Source: Paramoeba atlantica (taxonomy: Eukaryota; Protista; Discosea). From it: a stretch of 64,000 bases of DNA. The notes under the pieces are model-generated. The model worked only from the letters and a program-made list of their open reading frames with translations. It was not told the origin of the DNA and did no database searches. Of this stretch, positions 6,677 through 21,905 are shown piece by piece. The number at the start of each line of letters is the position of its first letter. Position 1 is the stretch's first letter. The DNA lies in assembly GCA_977017575.1 (NCBI GenBank), contig CDRNVI010000088.1, positions 84,728-148,727 on the forward strand, in the 5' to 3' direction. Position numbers and translations under genes: made by a program.

Positions 6677-8869
6677 CTATGCCTGGATAGGACAACAAAC
6701 GGGAAATGTATTTGAATTGCTGCTTTCGCTGTCAGTTAGTGTTTCAGATAAAAATACTGAACTCACCTCACGGGTGGCGCCAGGCGTCGGCAGCGCCTTC
6801 TCCGATTCGTCTCGCGCCACTACTTGCGGATAGTCCTTCATAACTTTCTCAGAATTCCGCAGCACTTCGTCGCATCTGTGTAGAATAGAAGCAACTGTGG
6901 GACGTGGACACCGGATACTCGAACTTGTCGGCTTGTTGGTTGAATATGTTGCGGAAACTGTTGAAGGAAGCGTATCTGTAGAACCGGAAACTTGTGGGGA
7001 GCGTTCTTTGCTTTGAGAAGACGCTTCCACTACGGATGGAGCCTTACTTAGGACAGGAAGTAGTCGTTCCCGGAGCTCTCGCCTCTTTGTCTCTAATAAA
7101 AGGAACTCAATCTCACTAACAGTTTGAAGGAAGGAGAGTTGTGAGAGAGATGTGTCTCCGGTCATTTGCCGGCGGTCGCTCCCCTGGGCAAGCAGGTCAG
7201 ATCTGCGTTTCGGAAAAATTTCCCGACACATGAGCTCCTGGGCTGTTGGTCTTTTTGTTGGATCTGGATGAATCAAACTAAAAATGAGGACGACGAGATC
7301 GACAGAATATTTTTTTGTTGCAGCTAGCGTTCGTTTTACTAAGTCGGTGGTACGCAGTGCAGTATGCTCTTCTCCATTCTTGGGTAGAAGTGTGCCACTC
7401 ATTAATTCATACATACACATGCCAAGCGCAAAAATATCACCACTCATGTAGAACATGCGCTCATTGAGCATATCGAGGGCAATGTATCGTGCGTCGCCGT
7501 CTTCCTGAGAAAAGAATGCCTCTGTATTTTCGCGCGAAGACCATATGTGCTGATGATTGTGAGAGAGTTCGTACTGCCTATACGATATCGGATGACCCGT
7601 GGTGGCGTCTAAAAATACGGCATGACCGAAGTCACCCAATTTAAGTCGCCCAGCTTCATCGTACAACACGTTTTCAAGCTTCAAGTCACCATGGGCAATC
7701 TGCTGCGAGTGGCATGTGTGGAGTGCAAGGGTAAGCTGACCCAGAATATCCAGTGCCTCGATTTCATCGGGAGGGGTCCGTGTGCGAGCTCGTCTTCCCA
7801 AACTTCCCCCGGGGCACAGCTCCATGAGGATGTACATCGTCTGCTGCGAGGGGTCGCCCTCCGCCCAGGTGTGGTGGAGTCGGACCACGTGAGGCCCACG
7901 ACAGGCGATTCCCATGGCGCGTACCTCCATAAGTTTGCGTGTTCGGTCACTTGAACCACAGAGAGCCTCACAGACTTGTTTCACAGCAAAGCGCTGGGCA
8001 TCGAATTTGCGCTCCACGATATACACCTTACCAAAGGAACCGGAACCAACCATTTCGATTTCATGAAAATCGGCATGATACCCATGGTAGAGCGCTGAAC
8101 CGAATTGGGTTTGAGAGAACCCCTGGGAGAATCCCTCATTTTGCGAGGGCAGGATTCCTTGGCTTAACGCCGCAGGGGGGAGCGGGAGCGACTCCTGAGA
8201 TCCCTCATCCATTTGGAGTCCTTGTATTCGGTGAAAAGCTAACTTATTTTCGCTTCTCGTGCGTTTGCTTTTGAAAGGATCAAAGGACGGGGGTTTATTC
8301 GGTTTTCTAGGCACTGCGGAAGCCGGGAAAGACTTTCGCGGTGTGGGGGGAAGTGCGATGGTATCGCGATGTGGCGTTTGCCATGCAATCGAGGTCGGGG
8401 CCCCAAAGGTCGGACGCGGCCCTACAGGTGTGACGGGCGCAGGAAGGGCGTAGGAGTCCAATGAGGCTTCAAAATCTCCCATATCAAGCGCCCCGGAGGT
8501 TCTCCCTCTCGAGGAACGGAATTGAGAGAGCAGGGGGCGGGACATACTATCTTGAGTGGAGAACCCCTTTGGACGACCTGTGAATCGTGAGGATTGTGAC
8601 CGCGAAAAGGGGAAGGAGGCTGAGGTCTCCGCGTAGGTAAAATGTGGCGTGTGAGGTGGAGAACAGGACTCGCCTCGGTCTTGTGGTGATCCGCTGATGT
8701 CTTGGGAGGAGTGCGTACGGCGTAGTGTGTGCTCTCGCTGAGAACCTACGTGAACTATTGAAAAGTCTTGCGAAAGCGGAGTGCCATTGCCTGATTTACG
8801 AACCACTTGATGTGCAGTAACTGGAGGAGACAAGGGAGCAGCGTTTGCTGAATTTTCGGCGTGGAGCAT
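6677..8869 (-). CDS. WEE1: Wee1/Myt1-like protein kinase
   Basis: GSGSFGKV, FAVK, HGDLKLENVL, LGDFG, EDGDARYIA (Wee1-type activation segment), long disordered N-terminus. First ATG at 8869. Confidence 0.85.
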   Translation of the reverse strand: MLHAENSANAAPLSPPVTAHQVVRKSGNGTPLSQDFSIVHVGSQREHTLRRTHSSQDISGSPQDRGESCSPPHTPHFTYAETSASFPFSRSQSSRFTGRPKGFSTQDSMSRPLLSQFRSSRGRTSGALDMGDFEASLDSYALPAPVTPVGPRPTFGAPTSIAWQTPHRDTIALPPTPRKSFPASAVPRKPNKPPSFDPFKSKRTRSENKLAFHRIQGLQMDEGSQESLPLPPAALSQGILPSQNEGFSQGFSQTQFGSALYHGYHADFHEIEMVGSGSFGKVYIVERKFDAQRFAVKQVCEALCGSSDRTRKLMEVRAMGIACRGPHVVRLHHTWAEGDPSQQTMYILMELCPGGSLGRRARTRTPPDEIEALDILGQLTLALHTCHSQQIAHGDLKLENVLYDEAGRLKLGDFGHAVFLDATTGHPISYRQYELSHNHQHIWSSRENTEAFFSQEDGDARYIALDMLNERMFYMSGDIFALGMCMYELMSGTLLPKNGEEHTALRTTDLVKRTLAATKKYSVDLVVLIFSLIHPDPTKRPTAQELMCREIFPKRRSDLLAQGSDRRQMTGDTSLSQLSFLQTVSEIEFLLLETKRRELRERLLPVLSKAPSVVEASSQSKERSPQVSGSTDTLPSTVSATYSTNKPTSSSIRCPRPTVASILHRCDEVLRNSEKVMKDYPQVVARDESEKALPTPGATREVSSVFLSETLTDSESSNSNTFPVCCPIQA

Positions 8870-9194
8870 AATAACAAGTAACAAAAAAGATTGAAAACGC
8901 TGGGCTAGGAAAAACAGACAATATTATGCAGAGTGTGCGTACAAGTACACGTAGGTAAACCAATTTTAGGAGATGTCAATATAGTGATTCCCTTACTGCA
9001 TGAACCCACGTTAGCGTGAACCAAAATCCGTTTCTGCTCATATTAACGCTGTCTGCTAATTAATCTCATATTAGTACTATACTCATGGTGTACTACACAT
9101 AAAATATTTCATGACCTAGTATGTACACACTGTAAGTATTGATATCATTCACAATGCTTCCTACGGTAATCGCAAACGTAATCATAAAAGTGTT

Positions 9195-9799: not shown

Positions 9800-11305
9800 C
9801 TATCTGGAATTTCCGGGAATGGCTGGCACTCGGGAGTAGGATGAGACACCACCTTGGCCCGAACCATGGGAGGAATACACAACAGAAGATTTGCTTGTCA
9901 CTGAACCGTGAGATACCCACTGAGCGTGTGATACGGAGGAGAGTGACATCTTACCTGAGAGGGAAGTGTCCACTGTGGTGCAACCGTGCTGTGCAGTTGT
10001 CGTTCCGGAAACGCCATGTTTACTCTCCTGCACAGTACACTGGGCTTGTGTGTCACTAGCCCGGACCACCGTTTCTAACTGAGTCCGAGCGTGCGCAAAC
10101 CGCTGCGCCGCTTCTGCCAGAAATGGATGACGCAACGCCTCGGTGGGAGTAATGCGCCGTGCGGGGTCGTACATCATGCAACGGCGAATGAGATCAAACA
10201 AGACGGCAGAATTGGGTACGCGTGTGTAGAGCATGTCACATAAAGGACGCTGACGAGCAACACGCTCAAGTGACCTTTCGTATTCCCTTCGTTCCGTGGG
10301 GGAGGCACGCGAGCTGAGTGTGGGAGGCCAAACTAGTTTCCCTTTGCCCGTGAACCAGTGGTAATGCTCGTCTCGAAAAAGTTTTTCCCATTTGTGAAAC
10401 GGGAAATTTTCACATCCTAGCTGTGCTTGCATCATGGCAAGATGCTCACGATTTTCGTGGGTGTCATACAGCAGACGTCCGGTGACTAACTCATATAAAA
10501 TACAACCCACACTCCATATGTCCGACGGACACCTCCATCCAGTTTCAAGGATGACTTCTGGAGCGCGATAATGTCTTGTTTGGATGGTAGAGTGCCTTCC
10601 CTCTGGCTTGTTGTCATCCTGGCAACCACCGAAGTCACAGACACGAATCAGAAATAATCCAGACTGATCAATACGGTTACCCAACCCGTTCCGACTCTCT
10701 CGTGCGGCCTCTTGTGCAGTTGTCTTGTCTTCATACCGGTCCATCAAAACGTTTTCTGGTTTTAAATCGGTGTGAACGACATGAGCTTTGGTGTGAAGGA
10801 ATTCCAAATGTTCGAAAAGCTGAAAAGCAACTTCGGCACACGTGCTTATCGAAAGTGGCTTTTCTTGTATCATCTCAAGAAGGCTGGGCCCATGGCGAGT
10901 CATCACCATGCAGACGTGTCCCGCTCGATTTTGAAATGAGGAAAGTAAACGCACCATGTGATATCGGTCATACGGATCGTTTCGGATGAGTCGTTTCATA
11001 TAAGTAATTTCATACCCCGCGTCATTGGCATATCTTTCAAGATTGCGCACAATCTTCATTGCACTGAATCGTCGAAGAGTGCGATCCCATGCGAGGATGA
11101 CTTTACCAAAAGTGCCTTCTCCGAGATAAGATATAATTTTGTACCTCCCGTGATCGTCCGCATCTAGGCCCAGTACCACGTGATAGTGGCCCTCTTCCGC
11201 GGATTGCTGTGGAACTTCATACGTTACTTTAGCTTTCTTTGAGTCGCTTGATTCATCGTCTCGATACCGCTTTTTGTGAACCAGGTAGTCCGTCCCGGAA
11301 GACAT
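9800..11305 (-). CDS. CLK1: CLK/LAMMER dual-specificity kinase (kinetoplastid CLK1/KKT10-like)
   Basis: LGEGTFGKV, HTDLKPEN, VCDFG, IQTRHYRAPE, EHLAMM signature. First ATG at 11305. Confidence 0.9.
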   Translation of the reverse strand: MSSGTDYLVHKKRYRDDESSDSKKAKVTYEVPQQSAEEGHYHVVLGLDADDHGRYKIISYLGEGTFGKVILAWDRTLRRFSAMKIVRNLERYANDAGYEITYMKRLIRNDPYDRYHMVRLLSSFQNRAGHVCMVMTRHGPSLLEMIQEKPLSISTCAEVAFQLFEHLEFLHTKAHVVHTDLKPENVLMDRYEDKTTAQEAARESRNGLGNRIDQSGLFLIRVCDFGGCQDDNKPEGRHSTIQTRHYRAPEVILETGWRCPSDIWSVGCILYELVTGRLLYDTHENREHLAMMQAQLGCENFPFHKWEKLFRDEHYHWFTGKGKLVWPPTLSSRASPTERREYERSLERVARQRPLCDMLYTRVPNSAVLFDLIRRCMMYDPARRITPTEALRHPFLAEAAQRFAHARTQLETVVRASDTQAQCTVQESKHGVSGTTTAQHGCTTVDTSLSGKMSLSSVSHAQWVSHGSVTSKSSVVYSSHGSGQGGVSSYSRVPAIPGNSR

Positions 11306-11557
11306 TACCAACGCTTACAACGCACTTCGAATCGTATTAAAAAGAAAGAAATGATTAATGTAAAATTTAGAAGCATCTACAAACGTGTTCTAGGGGCCAA
11401 GCTGCTTCGAAGGGTCTTTGGATTAATATATTGCGCCAAACACAGAACGAAAGATTAATAGGCCTGGGTATGATAGGTGAGCTAGAGTAATTAAACTAAG
11501 TGTGAAGATGTCCGGGAATAGGATTCCCGGACTTTGAACATACTCCTCTAAATATTT

Positions 11558-12019
11558 TTACCATTTTCTCTTTACCAGACGGTTGATGCATTCTTTAAAG
11601 TATATTACGTAATTCTTTTTAACTAATTCCCATGTTGAAGTCGACCCAAAAAAGTTGTCTGGATGCTTCTGCTGCGGAAAACGACGCAGCGCACAATCCT
11701 GACTGAGCTCTCGCAGCATGGTTAGTGAGCGCTCAGCTTCGTGAAGAAGAACCTGAATCCTGTCCGGATCTTTTATCTCCATGCCTTCCCGAAATCTTTG
11801 CCTAATAATAACCAGTGCTCTTTCATTCATTTGGGTGTGTTCGTTAACATCCACTAAATTGCTGTGAGGAAACAATAAAGCAAGCTTAAGCCACTGACGA
11901 TAAAGGCGAACGACACGATGTGCATGCGGGAGGACGGGTAGTGCAGTGCTACTGGAGTGCACTAGCAAATCACGGGCCGTTTCTGGCACGGCTATGTGTA
12001 GGCGTCTTGATATTCTCAT
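11558..12019 (-). CDS. Mitochondrial LYR-motif protein
   Basis: RVVRLYRQWLKLA...IRQRFREGMEIKDPDRIQVLLHEAE (LYR + RxxF pattern); presequence-like N-terminus. Confidence 0.8.
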   Translation of the reverse strand: MRISRRLHIAVPETARDLLVHSSSTALPVLPHAHRVVRLYRQWLKLALLFPHSNLVDVNEHTQMNERALVIIRQRFREGMEIKDPDRIQVLLHEAERSLTMLRELSQDCALRRFPQQKHPDNFFGSTSTWELVKKNYVIYFKECINRLVKRKW

Positions 12020-12218: not shown

Positions 12219-12848
12219 TTACACCATCGGTTTTTTGGGTTTAAAATCTTCAACCATGCTTCGGGTACGTGTCGGTGAGCGTGGCAACATCGATTCACGT
12301 GTCAAATACTGCTTTCGGCGATCCAAGGAAAAAGGCATTGGTTTCATTCGTAAGTCGTTCACCTCATCCATGTCAATTGCTACGGCTTTAGCAGGAGGCG
12401 CTGCACCGGATTCGTCCTCATCCTCCAAAAAGAGTGGAATCTGTGGATCCCAATCCCGACTAGTTTCGGTTCCCGGAATTTTCGGCATGCGATCCTCAGC
12501 AAGCCTTTGCTCCACAGCTGCTCCGGATCGTATAATTTGAAATAGTAATTTATTTTTAAAGTAGCGAAAGTGATAATTTGCTATTGTAGTCGTTCCCGGA
12601 CAGCCATCCGCGTAGTCCCAGTCCGGAATTTCATGCAATAACCCTTGAATGAGACGAGAGTTTCCGAACCCATGAAAGCGTTCCCACTCCCGCCGTGTTT
12701 TTCGCATGCGCTCATTAACTCTTCTAAGAGGATGTCCAGGATGTACAGTGGGGTAAGTGGGAATCTTCTTCGACCAGAAGGTACTCCAGTGTGGCCGATT
12801 CCCAATAGGATACGCCTCCGATGTCTGAAGAAAGCGTGTAGCGCGCAT
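12219..12848 (-). CDS. Mitochondrial ribosomal protein mL52-like
   Basis: LHEIPDWDYADGCPG matches the mL52 motif (LPDWSYADGRP); presequence-like N-terminus. Confidence 0.7.
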   Translation of the reverse strand: MRATRFLQTSEAYPIGNRPHWSTFWSKKIPTYPTVHPGHPLRRVNERMRKTRREWERFHGFGNSRLIQGLLHEIPDWDYADGCPGTTTIANYHFRYFKNKLLFQIIRSGAAVEQRLAEDRMPKIPGTETSRDWDPQIPLFLEDEDESGAAPPAKAVAIDMDEVNDLRMKPMPFSLDRRKQYLTRESMLPRSPTRTRSMVEDFKPKKPMV

Positions 12849-12993
12849 TTCGAAGTCAAATTTAAATGTAAGGTAGTGACGTTAATCTTATAAGACTAGC
12901 TTTTGTTTCGAAAACTGAAGAAATACTACTGGTTTTGGAGTTTTGTTTGTACTGTATTTGCAATTCGTGAAAGACTAAAAATTCCTCTCATTA

Positions 12994-13500
12994 TAGACTT
13001 CAGAACATTTTAGACTCTGGTAGTTATTCATGTACGCTCATCCACCTTAAGTGCTTAAGGTTGAGCGTTTTTGAACCAAAAGTTGCTCATTTTAGAGTGA
13101 AAAAAATGAGGTTTCGGGAGTGTGCAGACGCTTGGTAATATTTGCACGTCCCTAGGGTTGAACTAGTAAAATATTTTGTGTGCACCGCCCCTCATTGGTC
13201 TTAATGATTTCCTAGGGCTAAATCAGTTAAATATTTTGTCATTAAGGATCAATAGCATTCTCTGTGAGAGAAAAACTGTTGATCTCAGGTGGCATTTTGG
13301 AAAGCATCATGCATAAAAGAATGGAGTTTACAAATATTTAAATTGTATTACATTTGTACTCTATTGAGCTGGTAGGTCTTTCGTTTTTCGAATATCTTGA
13401 ATAAAGATTTGATAGAAAGAGCGAAATCGTCAATTTTACCCTCAAAATGATTGTCCGTAAACCAAATATCCGTAAAGTTATTTATTGCTGTAAATAAACC
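12994..13500. repeat. Dispersed direct repeat, copy 1 (probable DNA-transposon end)
   Basis: About 330 bp near-identical to 14244 onwards (offset 1250), then about 170 bp of diverged homology. Confidence 0.9.
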
Positions 13501-13577
13501 GTTACTTTATGTGTTGTGGTCAAGGCGTCCCAACTTCGCTGTTTCCAGTCTAAGTACCTGCTCAGCGAACCGCTTGA

Positions 13578-13735
13578 AATGAAGTGCTCTTGGCCGATCT
13601 AGGGTACATACAGTACCTAGGTTGTGCGCACTGCCTCGTACCCTATAAAAAATGGTCATGATCTCACTGCAGATGAAAAGCGATTGAATGAAAGGATTTC
13701 CTTGATCTCGCTCTCGAATTCAGTGACATTTCCTG
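13578..13735 (+). pseudogene. PIF/Harbinger-IS5 family DDE transposase relic
   Basis: NEVLLADLGYIQYLGCAHCLVPYK, then after a +1 shift NGHDLTADEKRLNERIS. This matches the ADxGY...PYK...LTxxEKxxNxRIS segment of this family. Stops upstream. Confidence 0.7.
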
Positions 13736-14243
13736 AGACCGCGCCGAATCCCCACCCGCAGCCCTTCAAATAATGAAATCGAAAATTGTGGCGACGCCTC
13801 GAGCCTACTTTGCCATTTTGGGGTTTTTATGTTTTGCTTTTGCTATCAATGATTCGGACAAGGCTTCGCTAGTTAGAGGTTCGAAATTTCAAGGCAAGTT
13901 GGGTCTCATTTTAGATTGGGACGAAGAGTACGCCTAATTTGCGCCGCAAAATGATTTTCTATCAGGCCTGATCAAATGTGTGGTCGCATCAAATGTGCCC
14001 GGAATCATCCCAAAAAGTACGTAAGACTACTTGGGGAGAAAGTGGTGGAAATAACCGTCGACGTCAGGCCTCTTCGATGGGCTCTTCGGGGTTTAAAGGA
14101 TTTTGAAATATTTGGGCGTTCGGTGACTTTTCAGACAAAGTCACCGTGAGGAATGATGCATCATTCGGAGCACGGAGTATTGATATCGCTTTGGATGAAA
14201 TTATTGTGTTTGAGAGGGCGATATTAGTTGTTTCGAGCTATTG

Positions 14244-14774
14244 TAGACTTCAGAACATTTTAGACTCTGGTAGTTATTCATGTACGCTCATCCACCTTAA
14301 GTGCTTAAGGTTGAGCGTTTTTGAACCAAAAGTTGCTCATTTTAGAGTGAAAAAAATGAGGTTTCGGGAGTGTGCAGACGCTTGGTAATATTTGCACGTC
14401 CCTAGGGTTGAACTAGTAAAATATTTTGTGTGCACTGCCCCTCATTGGTCTTAATGATTTCCTAGGGCTAAATCAGTTAAATATTTTGTCATTAAGGATC
14501 AATAGCATTCTCTGTGAGAGAAAAACTGTTGATCTCAGGTGGCATTTTGGAAAGCATCATGCATAAAAGAATGGAATTCACCAATATTTTACGTTGTACA
14601 TGTGTTACATTTGTACTCCATTGAGCTAGCAGGTATTCCGTTTTTCGAATATCTTTAACAAAGTTTTAATATAAAGAGTGAAATCGTCAATTTTACGCTC
14701 AACCTTCGGTCCGTAAATCAAATATCCGTATAAACGAAATATCCGTAAATTGATTTATTGCCGTAAACAGACCC
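14244..14774. repeat. Dispersed direct repeat, copy 2, ending in a PIF/Tourist-like terminus
   Basis: Second copy of 12994-13500. Reiterated tccgtaaa motifs lead to ...ccgtaaacagaccc (reverse complement GGGTCTGTTTACGG). Confidence 0.8.
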
Positions 14775-15119
14775 TTGCTTCATCAGGGTATTATATCCTG
14801 ATATAAGATATATCAGATATAGAGAGCATTTCTATATCATATAGAGAGCAAGGGGATGTCAAAAAGTTGTATTATGTGAGATGTCCGCACAGCTTTTTCT
14901 TGGTGTATGGGACATAATTTTTAGTTTTTTCCGCATGACCACCGGAGCATCAGGGGGTCGCTATGAACGATAGACGGCAACAAAAACTCTTCGTTAGGGA
15001 AACGAGATCTCACTAATCCTGCCAAAAAAGTCAGAAACGGATAAAAATAATTGTTGGGGATTCTTCTGAGATGGTTTGTGTGGTGTTGAAAGAATTATCG
15101 AAGCATCCTCGAATATTGT

Positions 15120-15851
15120 TCATACTTGAGAGGGTACGCGGCAACCCGGGTGTAATGATTCAGAGATAGGAAAAGTGGGCAAATGTGCTCCTAAGAAATA
15201 TTCAATAATCACGATTTGCGGTGGGTCGGTACAGTGTGAAAATTCTTGATTAGGTACTTGTGTACGTGTCTCCGCCATACTGCCTGTAGCAGTATCACGT
15301 ACTCGTTGCCTAGGGGAAATCTGTTCTTCTTGCATTGACAATTCTTCGAAGTAATTTAGATGAAACTCTCGCCTACGAAGTATCGAGTCACAAGATAGAC
15401 AAGCGTATTTTGTGCTCAACAAGTTAGATTTTGGACTCCCATCAGGATGAGTGCCGTATAAAATAGTTTGACCAATAGGTCGTGATCCCAATGTACGTAG
15501 TAAGCTGCCTTTGTAACTGTCGTAAAAGGAGCGAGGTACAACTACCCACCCGGGAACGACGTCTTGGAATGTATCATTCCCCTGGTTGTTTTTCCTTCTT
15601 GTGTGAGATATGTGGCGAATAAAAAACTCAGAAGTTAAAATTTCGTGTCGTAGTACAAAGTGGTAGCAAGATGACCCCATTGATTGCTCAAGAAGGGCAG
15701 TTAAATTTCCGTCGTATTTAGCCCAGCAGAATAAATTGTCCATTGCTTTAACATTCCACGAATGTAGGATGCAATCTTCTAGAGATACATACCACGGACT
15801 TACATCGTATGCCATTGTACTTATTTCTTCATCTGTGAATTTATTAAGCAT
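15120..15851 (-). CDS. Chorismate pyruvate-lyase (UbiC)-like protein
   Basis: Six colinear blocks match UbiC: CWAKYDGNLTALLEQ, FIRHI, GWVVVPRS, LRTLGSRPIGQTILY, LRRREFHL, IVIIEYFLGA. Confidence 0.65.
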   Translation of the reverse strand: MLNKFTDEEISTMAYDVSPWYVSLEDCILHSWNVKAMDNLFCWAKYDGNLTALLEQSMGSSCYHFVLRHEILTSEFFIRHISHTRRKNNQGNDTFQDVVPGWVVVPRSFYDSYKGSLLRTLGSRPIGQTILYGTHPDGSPKSNLLSTKYACLSCDSILRRREFHLNYFEELSMQEEQISPRQRVRDTATGSMAETRTQVPNQEFSHCTDPPQIVIIEYFLGAHLPTFPISESLHPGCRVPSQV

Positions 15852-16143: not shown

Positions 16144-16911
16144 TCAGACAATTTTTTGTAATTCATGAGCAACTTTAAGATAGTCCCGCCCCATTTGCAC
16201 AAAATTAATCTCTCCGCTCAACACTTTCTTTGGCAAGCTCTCCCCGTTTTCTTGCGCCTCCGCGGACACCCCCTCCTTATCCGTACCCGACGCCGGGAGC
16301 CCATCCCCCTTGCATCCCCCTCTCCACGCCTCTCGAAGATACCCCTCCACCTCCCGAGCCGCGGCCTCACACAACATGTGCAGGAAGGGCTCATAATCGG
16401 AGGTCGGCACGACGTGCTGGGCGAGCCGCAGCTTATTGTAGCTCCCCTCCGCAAGGAAACGCTCGAGCTCGATAATCGGCTGCACGTACGGGGTGGCCAA
16501 CCCCGCGCGAGGGAGAGACTCCAGCGCGGTGTGAAACGCCACCGCGTCCCGACCCACCAGCAGCGCCGTGAGATAGAGCCCATGGAGGAGATGCTCCCGG
16601 GCGGAGGGGTAGGCGGCGGTCCCCGGAAAATCCGTATAGTACGAGGTGAGCTGCAGGTAGCCCTGTGTAAACCCCTGGACGTCCCCCGTGCGTGCGTGAC
16701 ACAGGCAGACGTACTCCATGGCCTCGCGGACCAGGAGGGTTTCCTGCAACGCGGTGTCGTGTGTGGCGTCGGGGGAAAAGTAGGAAGGAAAGGTGAGGAA
16801 CTCTACCCGGGCGTGCTGAAGGTGTTGCAGACTCTCGGGGTAGAGTTGGGTATCGTATGCGGTTTTGGCGGATTGTAGGCTCTGGTAGGCTTTGTGGAAG
16901 GCCTCGGTCAT
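16144..16911 (-). CDS. RPN12: 26S proteasome lid subunit Rpn12/PSMD8
   Basis: LQLTSYYTDF, LLHGLYLTALL, AFHTALESLP, IELERFLAEGSYNKL. Confidence 0.88.
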   Translation of the reverse strand: MTEAFHKAYQSLQSAKTAYDTQLYPESLQHLQHARVEFLTFPSYFSPDATHDTALQETLLVREAMEYVCLCHARTGDVQGFTQGYLQLTSYYTDFPGTAAYPSAREHLLHGLYLTALLVGRDAVAFHTALESLPRAGLATPYVQPIIELERFLAEGSYNKLRLAQHVVPTSDYEPFLHMLCEAAAREVEGYLREAWRGGCKGDGLPASGTDKEGVSAEAQENGESLPKKVLSGEINFVQMGRDYLKVAHELQKIV

Positions 16912-17069: not shown

Positions 17070-18821
17070 TTATCCCCTTTTCACAAGTTTCTTTTTCGAA
17101 TGCCTCGTACGCTTTGTCAAGTTTGTTCTCCTTTCTTTGGATTTAGTTTTCCTTTTTACGTTTTTTTCTGTCTTCAATTCGGACGAAAGTAAAGCCGTTG
17201 GGCAGTCCAGCTTGGAACCAAGACTAAGATTCTTGGTCTCATCGTTGTACCCTAAGAGACCAGCAAGAGAAACATGCGTCTTAAACCTCTTACGCTGCTC
17301 ACGAGGCAGCATTTGGTTAATCGTGGGATAAAACGAGGCGGGGAGAAACAATGTGGAGGGTCCCGCACCCAGCATCTTCGCCCTCAAATTCCGCAACGCC
17401 ATCGCACTATCACGCATCCTCACCGACCACCACGACAGCAACTCTGGATTCTTCCGCGTAAGATTCCCCAGGCTCCGCAACCGACATATAATCGCCGTTA
17501 AATGAAACGGCGCCTCCGGACCCAACCAGTGCGACTGCACCGCCTCCAGGGGGGTATAATGCGGAAACCTCCGACCCTCCGCCCCCAACCACCCCCGCAC
17601 CGCGTGGGAGAGCCCCACATCCTCCCCTTCCGAGACCACCGCGTTGGCGGTCACCCGGCTGGGGCGGTAGAACTCGCCCAGCGGTCGCACCAGGAGACGT
17701 TCGAGGGCGCGGTTCACGACGCAGCACAGGGCGTGGGAGGAGAGCGTGAGGTGGTACGTCCCCGGGGGGTCGGGGGGGTCGCGGTACTCCGGGTCCATCA
17801 GAGCGGGGTGGAAGCCCCAGACCATGGCGTCTCCGAACACGCCGGGGGGGCGTGCGGGGGGGACGGGGGGCTCCGTTGTACCGCAGGGGTCGTGCCGGTG
17901 GTGAGTGGGGGTGGGGGATGGAGGGGAGGGGGGAGACGGGGAAGAAGAGGAGTCCCGGAGTGGGGTTGAGGATGGGGTGGCGGGGGGTGATAGTGCGGGA
18001 GGAGTGTTTGGGAGAGGGGGTTGTTGTGAGGCTCCACTCCATGGTTCTCGTCGGCTGGCGGTAATTTGCTGAGCGATGACTTGGGCCTCGAGTGCTCGCT
18101 GTGCTCGTTCATACATGTTGTATCGCACCTCCGGACGGAATGCCAGGGTCACGTCTGAGGTGTATCGAGAGGTTTTGCGGAGGTTCAGTTCGCGGTACTC
18201 CCCTTTTCCGTTGTCAAAGCGAATGGTGCGGTGAACTTCCGGGCGGCTCAGACAGGTCCCAATCGCGGCAAGCAAGTCCGTGAGACCTTCGCTCTCGGAG
18301 GCGTCGTTATCCGCATGGAAGATCAGAGTGCGCGTACGTTGCCGACGATTTAGATACCAAAACGAGACTCGGTAGATTTCCTCCGGGCGGTGCTTGTCAA
18401 GATCTATTTTCATCTCCAAGCATTCGACCTCATGACCAAGTTGCGCCCACGTAAGGTGTCGAGGGGTCTTCGTGAACTCGTATTTAAACATGAGCTTGTT
18501 GCGCCAGGATTCCTCGTCCTCAACATCCAACAGAGCATCCTGATCCGTGTTCATCTTTTCGATTGAAGTAATGTCATCGAGCTTCGCAAAGGAGGCATTG
18601 GTAGTCCCAGTGGTATATATCTCAGAAGTTAAAGAACTCTCGTATTCCCGAACTTGATCGCAGTCTGAATGAGAACTTTGAAGCTGTTTTGAGCCCAGGC
18701 ATACCGTGGAGAATCGAAAACAAGTAGCGAAACACTTAATTGCAGACCAATGAAGATTTAATGGTTTTCGATTGGCAGGTCTTCCCAAGCTAAAAGATAC
18801 CCATTTTTTACGGAGGAACAT
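17070..18821 (-). CDS. Hypothetical protein with a probable mitochondrial presequence and a central Pro-rich linker
   Basis: 583-codon ORF on the cluster strand; Arg/Phe/Ser-rich N-terminus; two globular-looking regions either side of a PPxP-rich stretch; basic tail. Confidence 0.7.
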   Translation of the reverse strand: MFLRKKWVSFSLGRPANRKPLNLHWSAIKCFATCFRFSTVCLGSKQLQSSHSDCDQVREYESSLTSEIYTTGTTNASFAKLDDITSIEKMNTDQDALLDVEDEESWRNKLMFKYEFTKTPRHLTWAQLGHEVECLEMKIDLDKHRPEEIYRVSFWYLNRRQRTRTLIFHADNDASESEGLTDLLAAIGTCLSRPEVHRTIRFDNGKGEYRELNLRKTSRYTSDVTLAFRPEVRYNMYERAQRALEAQVIAQQITASRREPWSGASQQPPLPNTPPALSPPATPSSTPLRDSSSSPSPPSPPSPTPTHHRHDPCGTTEPPVPPARPPGVFGDAMVWGFHPALMDPEYRDPPDPPGTYHLTLSSHALCCVVNRALERLLVRPLGEFYRPSRVTANAVVSEGEDVGLSHAVRGWLGAEGRRFPHYTPLEAVQSHWLGPEAPFHLTAIICRLRSLGNLTRKNPELLSWWSVRMRDSAMALRNLRAKMLGAGPSTLFLPASFYPTINQMLPREQRKRFKTHVSLAGLLGYNDETKNLSLGSKLDCPTALLSSELKTEKNVKRKTKSKERRTNLTKRTRHSKKKLVKRG

Positions 18822-19763: not shown

Positions 19764-20342
19764 TTAGGAACTATGCGCCGAATCCTTCGGGGGCAAATAT
19801 TTTTCAATAATAGCACCAATTTCTTCAGCATTCTGGGTAAACGGTGTGAATCGAGCAACTACTCGTCCGTTGCGATCGCACAGAAATTTTGCAAAGTTCC
19901 ATCCCACAAAACCCTCGAACTCCGGGTTTGATGTAGTAAGAAAACGATATAATGGGTGTTGCTTAGAGCCTTTGACGTCTAGCTTCTCCAGCATGGGAAA
20001 AGTAACTTTGTAATTGTCCTTTGCCCAGTCACGAATTGTACAAGAGTCTCCGGGCTCTTGCCAAGCGAATTGATTGCACGGAGCCCCGATCACTGTGAAA
20101 CCTCTAGCATGATACTTATCCTGCAGTTCTTGCAGAATGGGGTAGGTTCCCTTTGTGAGGCCACACCGTGAGGCAACGTTTACAATTAATGTGACTTGAC
20201 CACGAAATTGAGAAAAGGGAAATGTCTTTCCCGCGTAATCGGTAGCAACGATATCAAAGAGACAATTTGCAATGGCTGACATATAACTTGCAGCAAATAA
20301 GAGAAGTAATCGGTAAAACGCGCTAAATAAAAATACATGCAC
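19764..20342 (-). CDS. GPX: Non-selenium glutathione peroxidase-type (tryparedoxin peroxidase II-like) enzyme
   Basis: VNVASRCGLT, GAPCNQFAWQEPG, GWNFAKFL. The true start may be MSAIANC at 20282. Confidence 0.93.
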   Translation of the reverse strand: MHVFLFSAFYRLLLLFAASYMSAIANCLFDIVATDYAGKTFPFSQFRGQVTLIVNVASRCGLTKGTYPILQELQDKYHARGFTVIGAPCNQFAWQEPGDSCTIRDWAKDNYKVTFPMLEKLDVKGSKQHPLYRFLTTSNPEFEGFVGWNFAKFLCDRNGRVVARFTPFTQNAEEIGAIIEKYLPPKDSAHSS

Positions 20343-20756: not shown

Positions 20757-21905
20757 TCACTCAGAAATTTTGGGCACGCGCTCAATTTGTTTCCTCAGAG
20801 CCTCAAGCGCGTGGCTTCTGGAGTCCTGGATAAGACCCAGGCCCTCATCGAGCAACAGTCTCGCGGCATCCGGTTTTTGCAGGTGCACTAATGCGGTGGC
20901 ACCTTGCAAATATGCTTGAGAATTGTAACCCCGACTAGCCGAGACGGCACTTCGAGCACTTTCCTCTGCTTCACGATACCGACGCATACGATTTAACACC
21001 CCGGCCTCAAGGGCGTAAATCCCACCGAGCCGCGTAGGGTTTCGCGTGCATGACCGCGCGACTTTACAGCACCCCAGTGCCGGGAAGTGTAGTCCTTCGT
21101 GATTCGCTGAAATGGCCATAGCGCATAGTATTTTACTAAGGTACACATCCCGAGGTGCGTCTTCGTCGGTATCCTCACCTGAAAGAGTGGAGACCGGAGC
21201 CTTTGGTTCCAGGATTGGATCCTCCTGCTCCAGGACGTGTATAAAATCCTTTAGATTGGAAGGGAACTCTTCAATGAGGTGATTCGGAGCCTCACCGGGT
21301 CCCGAAAGCCCAGGATGTATCAGGTAGGCTAGACTTTTCTCTGGGAGGAGATCCTCTGTAATTCGTAGCGAGGATAGAAACCGATCCATCACTCGGCGGA
21401 TCTCCTGCACTTCGCCTCTTGTTTCAATCAACGCGAGAACTCGTCGTCCTAACGCGAGGGTGGTCTCTCTTGCGAGGTGTTCTCCATTCTTCGCGGTTTC
21501 TCCCGCTTCGTGCTCATCTGGGACATATTCTGAAAGCTGCTTTTCATTCTCACGCTTTGGATCACCCCCAAAAATATGCTTATATGCGCGATCAAATATT
21601 CTTCCTTGTTTCTTATCGGGCTGACCAAACGTTCCGCCTATTATATTACTCCGTCGTGAAATGTGCCAGAGGTTTACTCTTTTGTTATCTAGAAAAAATA
21701 TACGCAAAGTGCTTTGTTGGAAGGGTGTGTTATGCCTCGAAATAGAGAAAGTCGAAGTAGAGCCAAGGCGAAAAATTGCGTGATCATGTTGAGAAACAGG
21801 GACGGATCGCTTAAAATCATCGGAATAGTACCCCTTGGTGTCGGGTCTAAAGCACATTGGCTTGTCGGGAAAAGAATCTCTTAGCATAAGTGAGGCGAAC
21901 TTCAT
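20757..21905 (-). CDS. Hypothetical protein with C-terminal TPR-like repeats
   Basis: YALEAGVLNRMRRYREAEESARSAV and AYLQGATALVHLQKPDAARLLLDEGL fit the TPR helix pattern. Confidence 0.65.
   Translation of the reverse strand: MKFASLMLRDSFPDKPMCFRPDTKGYYSDDFKRSVPVSQHDHAIFRLGSTSTFSISRHNTPFQQSTLRIFFLDNKRVNLWHISRRSNIIGGTFGQPDKKQGRIFDRAYKHIFGGDPKRENEKQLSEYVPDEHEAGETAKNGEHLARETTLALGRRVLALIETRGEVQEIRRVMDRFLSSLRITEDLLPEKSLAYLIHPGLSGPGEAPNHLIEEFPSNLKDFIHVLEQEDPILEPKAPVSTLSGEDTDEDAPRDVYLSKILCAMAISANHEGLHFPALGCCKVARSCTRNPTRLGGIYALEAGVLNRMRRYREAEESARSAVSASRGYNSQAYLQGATALVHLQKPDAARLLLDEGLGLIQDSRSHALEALRKQIERVPKISE

Follow-up and report, generated by a model that had tools for sequence, protein, structure and literature searches.

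A probable, very divergent homologue of UbiC-type chorismate lyases in a kinetoplastid-style gene cluster

A 64,000-nucleotide stretch of DNA (contig CDRNVI010000088.1 of assembly GCA_977017575.1, forward-strand positions 84,728 to 148,727; the window, in whose coordinates all positions are given) carries on its minus strand an open reading frame (ORF) at 15120-15851, running from ATG to TGA and encoding a protein of 243 amino acids plus stop. This protein, P0001, is very probably a divergent homologue of UbiC-type chorismate lyases, and is predicted to be soluble with a mass of ∼27 kDa. As far as sequence comparison can tell, the gene is intact and conserved, and homology to chorismate lyases extends over its first two thirds and takes in the invariant Arg of that family. 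In our view the best explanation, to which we give an even chance, is that P0001 belongs to a very divergent lineage of UbiC-type chorismate pyruvate-lyases that occurs in one or more further free-living kinetoplastids of deep-branching position. Real chorismate lyase activity of P0001 itself we rate as close to even, if anything slightly below. The gene had been noticed in an earlier examination of the letters alone (the sequence-only reading), which matched six colinear blocks of the protein to strings given for E. coli UbiC; these strings all proved correct when compared with K-12 ubiC from RefSeq.

An exhaustive phmmer search of 1.84 billion cluster representatives identified one true relative of P0001. 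This protein, P0002, is the 141 amino acid product of the free-living prokinetoplastid Apiculatamorpha spiralis strain PhF-6, and is represented by three Trinity isoforms in a EukProt transcriptome. It shows 35% identity to P0001 over 116 aligned positions in the N-terminal part of the query (residues 20-133), with an E-value of 8.8e-5 against the whole library and of 8e-14 pairwise. The existence of a transcribed relative argues that the gene is real and is transcribed in a relative, while the recovery of a single one indicates that the family is very small. Two other phmmer matches, P0003 and P0004, are repeat proteins and were rejected as low-complexity artefacts. An identical copy of P0001 has been called on ENA contig ERZ24900291:ctg3748l. 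A word-index search with P0001 returns only the protein itself, from that ENA assembly, and the same search with the P0001 and P0002 pair returned no sequences besides these two. No further members were revealed by two metagenome scans, one based on their alignment and the other on a degenerate DNA pattern for L-R-T-L-G-x-x-P-I-G-x-T-x-L-Y-G, and tblastn with P0002 gave no match in PLSDB. The A. spiralis isoforms (P0002, P0005 and P0006) are a few substitutions apart and end at 129 or 141 amino acids, shortly after an S-T-R-S-P-F-E-F motif, which matches the T-R-D-F-I-E motif of UbiC.

The relationship to UbiC emerges from comparison of profiles. A word search seeded with E. coli UbiC, together with a scan of genome contigs, recovered only Enterobacteriaceae sequences of at least 82% identity, a set too uniform for a profile; against this narrow enterobacterial profile hhalign gave a P-value of only 0.014, yet in the register that the sequence-only reading had proposed. 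A diverse profile of 11 chorismate lyases was assembled by iterated tblastn in PLSDB, with members from E. coli, Klebsiella, Serratia, Proteus, Pseudomonas, Acinetobacter, Aeromonas, Vibrio, Paraburkholderia, Neisseria and the Bacteroidota species Chondrinema. These show 21-78% identity to E. coli UbiC, and four of them come from annotated records in which the gene lies directly upstream of ubiA. When the P0001 and P0002 pair was compared with this profile, hhalign reported a probability of 88.4% (P 2.8e-6, score 44.2) over query residues 38-153 and UbiC residues 23-133, and P0002 alone gave 92.6% (P 4.4e-7). The P-value improved with each more diverse bacterial profile, from 0.014 to 1.3e-5 to 3e-6, as is expected under true homology. 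With a profile of 10 sequences the score was 39.4, compared with 13.0 ± 2.4 (maximum 22.4) in column shuffles, none of 400 of which reached it.

Other methods led to the same family and register. A HMMER profile of the 11 enzymes scored P0002 at 14.6 bits (P 9e-7) and P0001 at 8.3 bits (P 8e-5), values reached by none of 3000 shuffles of either protein, and its alignments share the hhalign register. A colinear chain of the six blocks, scored with a position-specific scoring matrix (PSSM), reached 54.6 bits, as against 16 ± 5 (maximum 39) in 3000 shuffles. P0001 was the top scorer against the UbiC profile among the 52 ORFs of the window, and unforced MAFFT alignment reproduced the register of blocks 1-5. 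Among the best hits listed for P0002 in a comparison of ESM-Atlas features, nearly all were clusters of PF04345 (UbiC) or PF01947, with scores of 0.92-0.93 and 194-209 of 256 features shared, and the ten best family-bearing hits all fell in one clan; the features of P0001 itself gave no usable match there. Taken together, hhalign, the HMMER profile, the shuffle controls and the ESM features of the orthologue support the UbiC-type relationship that had been proposed from the letters alone, and the alignments support it for the first two thirds of P0001. The most divergent bacterial members that we found, with 21-24% identity to E. coli UbiC, are two unannotated chorismate-lyase-like ORFs on large secondary replicons: L089 on Paraburkholderia hospita plasmid pmHSR1_P and L090 on Vibrio aquimaris pTHAF100_a.

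P0001 shares with UbiC (PF04345; E. coli entries 1FW9, 1G1B and 1JD3) the order of its motifs: W-L-x(3)-G-S-[LM]-T, a W-x-R-E strand, a hydrophobic strand, L-G-x-x-P-[LI]-G-x-x-L-[FY], a basic R-R and finally E-x-F-L, the last two being weakly placed. Across the 11 bacterial enzymes (E. coli numbering, counting Met) L29, R77, L81, R141, S143, E156 and F158 are invariant, and W28, S34, T36, E78, P87, L110, P114, L115, G116, L119, F120 and R127 are nearly so. P0001 matches conserved positions of the family at W43, T51, R79, L121, G122, P125, I126, G127, L131 and Y132, all of which, including W43 and T51 of block 1, are identical in P0002, and its D-G-N-L-T (47-51) and L-G-S-R-P-I-G (121-127) segments are aligned in register with UbiC; A44 occupies the L29 position. 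The structures of UbiC show R76, E155 and the backbone amides of M34 and L114 (mature numbering) holding the product. R79 of P0001 aligns with the product-binding Arg (R76, or R77 counting Met), which is Arg in all 11 bacterial enzymes and in the two kinetoplastid proteins, while L50 aligns with M34 and I126 with L114. We also considered R68 (in V-L-R-H-E) as the counterpart of R76 and rejected it, as the orthologue does not conserve it in register and it fits instead the first strand of UbiC (I-R-E-G).

P0001 has 243 amino acids compared with 165-190 in UbiC, including ∼20 extra residues at the N-terminus. It lacks the flap formed by residues 55-72 of E. coli UbiC, as do the Vibrio and Neisseria enzymes, and the three have in common a deletion of 15 columns relative to E. 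coli; a one-residue insertion after the P-I-G loop occurs likewise in the Chondrinema enzyme. Judged from these alignments, the deletion and the insertion are natural variation within the family.

The last third of the protein is placed with less certainty. Region 135-243 alone gave no match to the profile in hhalign. For block 5 the best PSSM site is 156-165, with which MAFFT agrees, whereas low-threshold hhalign prefers 179-185. In block 6, E217 would correspond to the catalytic E155 (E156 counting Met), F219 to F158 and L220 to L159 (both counting Met), and the Neisseria enzyme has T-E-Y-F-L-P at the last-strand position. The E217-Y-F-L segment contains the best local HMMER site (217-220, P ∼0.06), and hhalign aligns it at a mact setting of 0.01. 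When truncated or split UbiC rows were given to MAFFT, the short pieces were aligned to the wrong strand and the alignment drew the truncated rows out over the insert. Blocks 5 and 6 are separated by a spacer of 47 amino acids in P0001, compared with a hairpin turn of 4-6 in bacteria, and on the predicted models it is probably a disordered loop. The six blocks of the sequence-only reading are all present, with blocks 1-4 far beyond chance and blocks 5 and 6 on their own marginal (two-block chain, P ∼0.02). Of the Arg, Arg and Glu that it listed as retained at the active site, R79 lies in the statistically supported part and the second Arg and the Glu lie outside it. Its insertion of ∼45 residues agrees with the 47-residue spacer, provided that blocks 5 and 6 are correctly assigned.

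Table 1. The chorismate-lyase-like gene and the features of its product, with positions in the window
Feature	Position	Strand	Remarks
Chorismate-lyase-like gene (P0001)	15120..15851	-	Complete ORF; same strand as its neighbours
Statistically supported homology region, residues 38-153	15393..15740	-	Found by hhalign; unforced MAFFT gives the same register
Block 1, WAKYDGNLTALLEQ, residues 43-56	15684..15725	-	W43 and D-G-N-L-T correspond to the helix start W-L-x(3)-G-S-[LM]-T of the family
Block 2, strand F-I-R-H-I-S-H, residues 77-83 (FIRHI, 77-81)	15603..15623	-	Contains R79
Block 3, GWVVVPRS, residues 101-108	15528..15551	-	Central beta strand; top PSSM site 13.0 bits, next best 4.1
Block 4, LRTLGSRPIGQTILY, residues 118-132	15456..15500	-	L-G-x-x-P-[IL]-G-x-x-[IL]-[FY] loop; top PSSM site 14.7 bits
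Block 5, LRRREFHL, residues 158-165	15357..15380	-	Candidate W-G-R-R-S-R strand; best site only 6.4 bits
Polar 47-residue stretch, residues 166-212, rich in E, Q, S, T and R	15216..15356	-	No bacterial counterpart; predicted local distance difference test score (pLDDT) ∼30 in both AlphaFold runs
Block 6, IVIIEYFLGA, residues 213-222	15186..15215	-	Candidate last strand

What P0001 folds into, what E217 does, which substrate is used and how the protein relates to ubiquinone are inferred. Most likely, P0001 would bind chorismate in a closed pocket and eliminate pyruvate to leave 4-hydroxybenzoate. The ring carboxylate would be gripped by R79, with further ligand contacts from the backbone amides of L50 (in the G-N-L-T motif) and I126 (in the P-I-G loop), and E217 on the last strand would provide the catalytic carboxylate. 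COQ2 would next prenylate the 4-hydroxybenzoate on the way to ubiquinone. As the source of chorismate we envisage the cell's own pathway, through AROM and chorismate synthase, and not a host.

A number of results weigh against such an enzyme, and we consider them here together with the explanations that they favour. The most serious of these holds that P0001 has the ancestry and fold of a chorismate lyase and is no longer a lyase: it might now bind a ligand or serve some other purpose, act as an enzyme on a related compound, or be a decaying relic that a few lineages have kept; we think this unlikely, although it deserves to be taken seriously. Positions that are invariant in the family are altered. 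The Ser of the R-R-S motif (E. coli S143, counting Met) is unmatched, since I-L-R-R-R-E-F supplies the arginines and has Glu or Arg in place of the Ser, and the alternative site at 179-185 is also without Ser. The invariant L81 is replaced by H83, with His in both kinetoplastid proteins, and E78 by H80, with Gln in P0002 and in the Chondrinema enzyme. H83 lies on the same side of the strand as R79 and may therefore be a lineage-specific pocket residue. The 47-residue polar insert breaks the terminal hairpin, and the hairpin carrying the candidate catalytic Glu is weakly supported by the alignments, its match being not significant (P 0.02-0.06); for the last strand the ungapped PSSM prefers residues 226-235, and MAFFT places none at E217. 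The A. spiralis ORFs stop at 129-141 amino acids, before the terminal hairpin; they may reflect a truncated assembly or a genuinely shortened protein, and as they end before the C-terminal region they are uninformative about it. Finally, GC content at third codon positions (GC3) in the gene equals the intergenic GC content, which suggests weak codon selection. Set against these points, the ligand-contacting Arg, G-x-L-T and P-[IL]-G elements are kept in both species, and E-Y-F-L is identical to the Neisseria motif and stands where the last strand is expected. A frame of 243 codons is unlikely to stay open in DNA of 42% GC without selection, and the relative's lineage is reported in PMC7052976 to make chorismate.

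Chance or convergence would make P0001 a lineage-specific kinetoplastid protein of unrelated fold. In its favour, curated family models and PDB sequences all fail to pick P0001 up. Neither P0001, four fragments of it, the orthologue nor the two-sequence profile returned a chorismate-lyase, DUF98 or UTRA match from Pfam, NCBIfam or the PDB sequence library. With PF04345 there was no match at E-values up to 10 for P0001, the four fragments or the orthologue, all below the gathering threshold of 23.6 bits, whereas the positive control, E. coli UbiC, scored 107 bits. BLASTP of P0001 against E. coli UbiC gave an E-value of 1. Predicted structures did not help. From the two-sequence alignment AlphaFold2 reached a mean pLDDT of 35.1, and with 12 enterobacterial UbiC rows added, a run that is circular because of those rows, it reached 40.6, with only residues 64-121 attaining 54-68 and no UbiC fold produced even so. 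The low-confidence elements comprise a helix (48-58), three strands (63-72, 76-89 and 92-106) and, as far as residue 119, short helices; this succession of a helix, three long strands and helices (residues 48-119) follows what we take to be the UbiC order, at a confidence too low to serve as evidence. A Foldseek search of these models against PDB gave no match at E ≤ 0.001, with UbiC (1JD3) at rank 7 (E 0.64), but such a search is meaningless given the low AlphaFold2 confidence.

The statistics also call for care, as the hypothesis arose from a reading in which many families were considered. Correction for multiple testing over ∼25,000 families leaves an hhalign E-value of roughly 0.01-0.1, and P0001 alone reached a P-value of only 1-2e-3, in the same register, so that much of the signal comes from P0002. 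We nevertheless consider chance resemblance improbable. The hhalign, HMMER profile and ESM feature analyses agree on family and register, two sequences that are only 35% identical match independently, the score rises with template diversity while shuffle controls are clean, and the matched positions are those most conserved in the family.

That the gene is a recently acquired bacterial ubiC, working on host or prey chorismate in an organism without a shikimate pathway, seems to us very improbable. There is a precedent in the gammaproteobacterial UbiC of Strigomonas, a symbiont-harbouring trypanosomatid (PMC3833962), which like P0001 is a chorismate-lyase-type gene in a kinetoplastid nuclear genome and has been proposed to feed ubiquinone synthesis, and a recent arrival would be compatible with a GC3 that is the lowest in its gene cluster. 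The Strigomonas protein, however, is canonical and groups with Pseudomonas, as befits a recent transfer, and it was not retrieved as a relative of P0001, which appears to be a separate and much older lineage with no near bacterial kin. The sequence-only reading had called the gene bacterial-type. This description finds no support in a protein with ∼20-24% identity to bacterial UbiC, for which there was no Pfam or NCBIfam match and no bacterial protein among the 1.84 billion representatives; none closer than ∼24% identity was found, nor did the PLSDB tblastn or the metagenomes supply one. Unlike bacterial ubiC, moreover, the gene has no neighbouring ubiA, and is nuclear and part of a eukaryotic polycistron. 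The low GC3 carries little weight in a cluster where values range from 0.35 to 0.74 and the neighbours are clearly native. As for horizontal acquisition, which had also been proposed, the sole relative belongs to another deep-branching kinetoplastid, so that old vertical inheritance fits at least as well as transfer. The further suggestion of host-derived chorismate loses its ground, since PMC7052976 reports the whole shikimate pathway in free-living prokinetoplastids, to which the relative belongs; the premise that chorismate is lacking is then probably wrong, and host chorismate would not be needed.

Two related families deserve mention. Rv2949c-like/DUF98 proteins (PF01947) belong to the same Pfam clan as UbiC and catalyse the same reaction, and PF01947 clusters, one of which has members from green algae, are among the ESM-Atlas neighbours of P0002; P0001 has no Pfam match to PF01947, and the comparisons do not separate its closeness to PF04345 from that to PF01947. 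The UTRA domain (PF07702) of GntR/HutC regulators shares the chorismate-lyase fold at the clan level, and a repurposed UbiC/UTRA fold was the alternative that the sequence-only reading had offered. A UTRA-type regulator domain was rejected: hhalign comparison with four E. coli regulators (PhnF, MngR, FrlR and YidP) gave P-values of 0.41 and 0.13, there was no Pfam GntR or UTRA match, and P0001, unlike UTRA regulators, is without a winged-helix DNA-binding domain. The same small profiles did connect UbiC with UTRA (P 0.002), and as this link was detected while P0001 gave none, P0001 sits with the enzyme branch.

The idea that the ORF is not a gene at all, either a chance open frame or a pseudogene, is scarcely credible: its intergenic-like composition, the patchy coverage described below and the lack of RNA evidence (a look-up of sequencing runs gave no RNA run containing the locus, though contigs cannot show expression) are outweighed by the transcribed A. 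spiralis homologue (35% identity; E-values as above), by 243 open codons and by an orientation that is that of the polycistronic cluster. Two sequencing runs, of unspecified kind, carry the whole ORF without internal difference and may be the source of the assembly. In a third run (X4, likewise of unspecified kind) coverage of the ORF is patchy, and one contig carries 25 foreign letters right next to position 15483, which lies within the ORF; these letters are absent elsewhere in the window, and the contig ends at 15850, one base short of the A of the start codon. Possible explanations of this contig are a chimeric unitig, an RNA junction, or structural variation in a different isolate.

The gene lies in a run of nine ORFs on the same strand (6.7-21.9 kb), an arrangement that fits a kinetoplastid-style polycistronic cluster. 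Members of the run include two protein kinases, a LYR protein, a CSN8/PSMD8-family protein and a glutathione-peroxidase-type protein. The two protein-kinase genes and the Complex1_LYR-family gene are located at 6677-8884, 9800-11311 and 11558-12019 (all minus strand), and no Pfam family matches the ORFs at 12219-12848, 17070-18821 and 20757-21905. The upstream neighbour (16144-16911, minus strand) encodes a CSN8/PSMD8/eIF3K-family protein (Pfam E-value 1e-8). The GC3 of the chorismate-lyase-like gene is 0.35, compared with 0.40-0.74 for its native neighbours; that of the CSN8/PSMD8/eIF3K-family gene, 0.74, is twice as high, a strikingly uneven codon composition for one polycistronic cluster. 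The glutathione-peroxidase-type gene (19764-20342, minus strand) has among the best solved relatives of its product the T. cruzi and T. brucei enzymes (3E0U, 2VUP and 3DWV), and this affinity would fit a euglenozoan host genome. Downstream of the UbiC-like gene is a gene-free gap of 2.3 kb (12849-15119; 39% GC), with short inverted A/T-rich repeats at ∼14800-14880.

In most eukaryotes the ring precursor of ubiquinone is derived from tyrosine, and to our knowledge the eukaryotes known to have a direct chorismate lyase mostly gained it, as Strigomonas did, by recent transfer from bacteria. According to PMC7052976, the main comparative study of euglenozoan metabolism, free-living prokinetoplastids including PhF-6 keep all genes of the shikimate pathway, with steps 2-6 on an AROM fusion, while other kinetoplastids have lost the pathway. 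The same study calls chorismate a ubiquinone precursor; its searchable text and supplements list no chorismate lyase for the step from chorismate towards ubiquinone. We tentatively propose, as a possibility that we rate as less likely than not, that P0001 represents a native, vertically inherited euglenozoan lineage of chorismate lyases, too diverged for family models to recognise. Free-living kinetoplastids would thereby have a direct, nuclear-encoded route from chorismate to 4-hydroxybenzoate, and the ancestors of bodonids and trypanosomatids would have lost it along with the shikimate pathway. P0001 would then be among the very few eukaryotic chorismate lyases not recently imported from bacteria, and would put a name to the enzyme for a blank step in published euglenozoan pathway maps. 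If it is active, it may fill the missing step from chorismate to 4-hydroxybenzoate in free-living kinetoplastids, the step would have disappeared in kinetoplastid evolution when the shikimate pathway did, and the protein would provide a seed sequence for a family that is invisible to Pfam and NCBIfam. If it is inactive, P0001 would still be a strongly remodelled chorismate-lyase scaffold, with its insert of 47 residues and its altered pocket residues.

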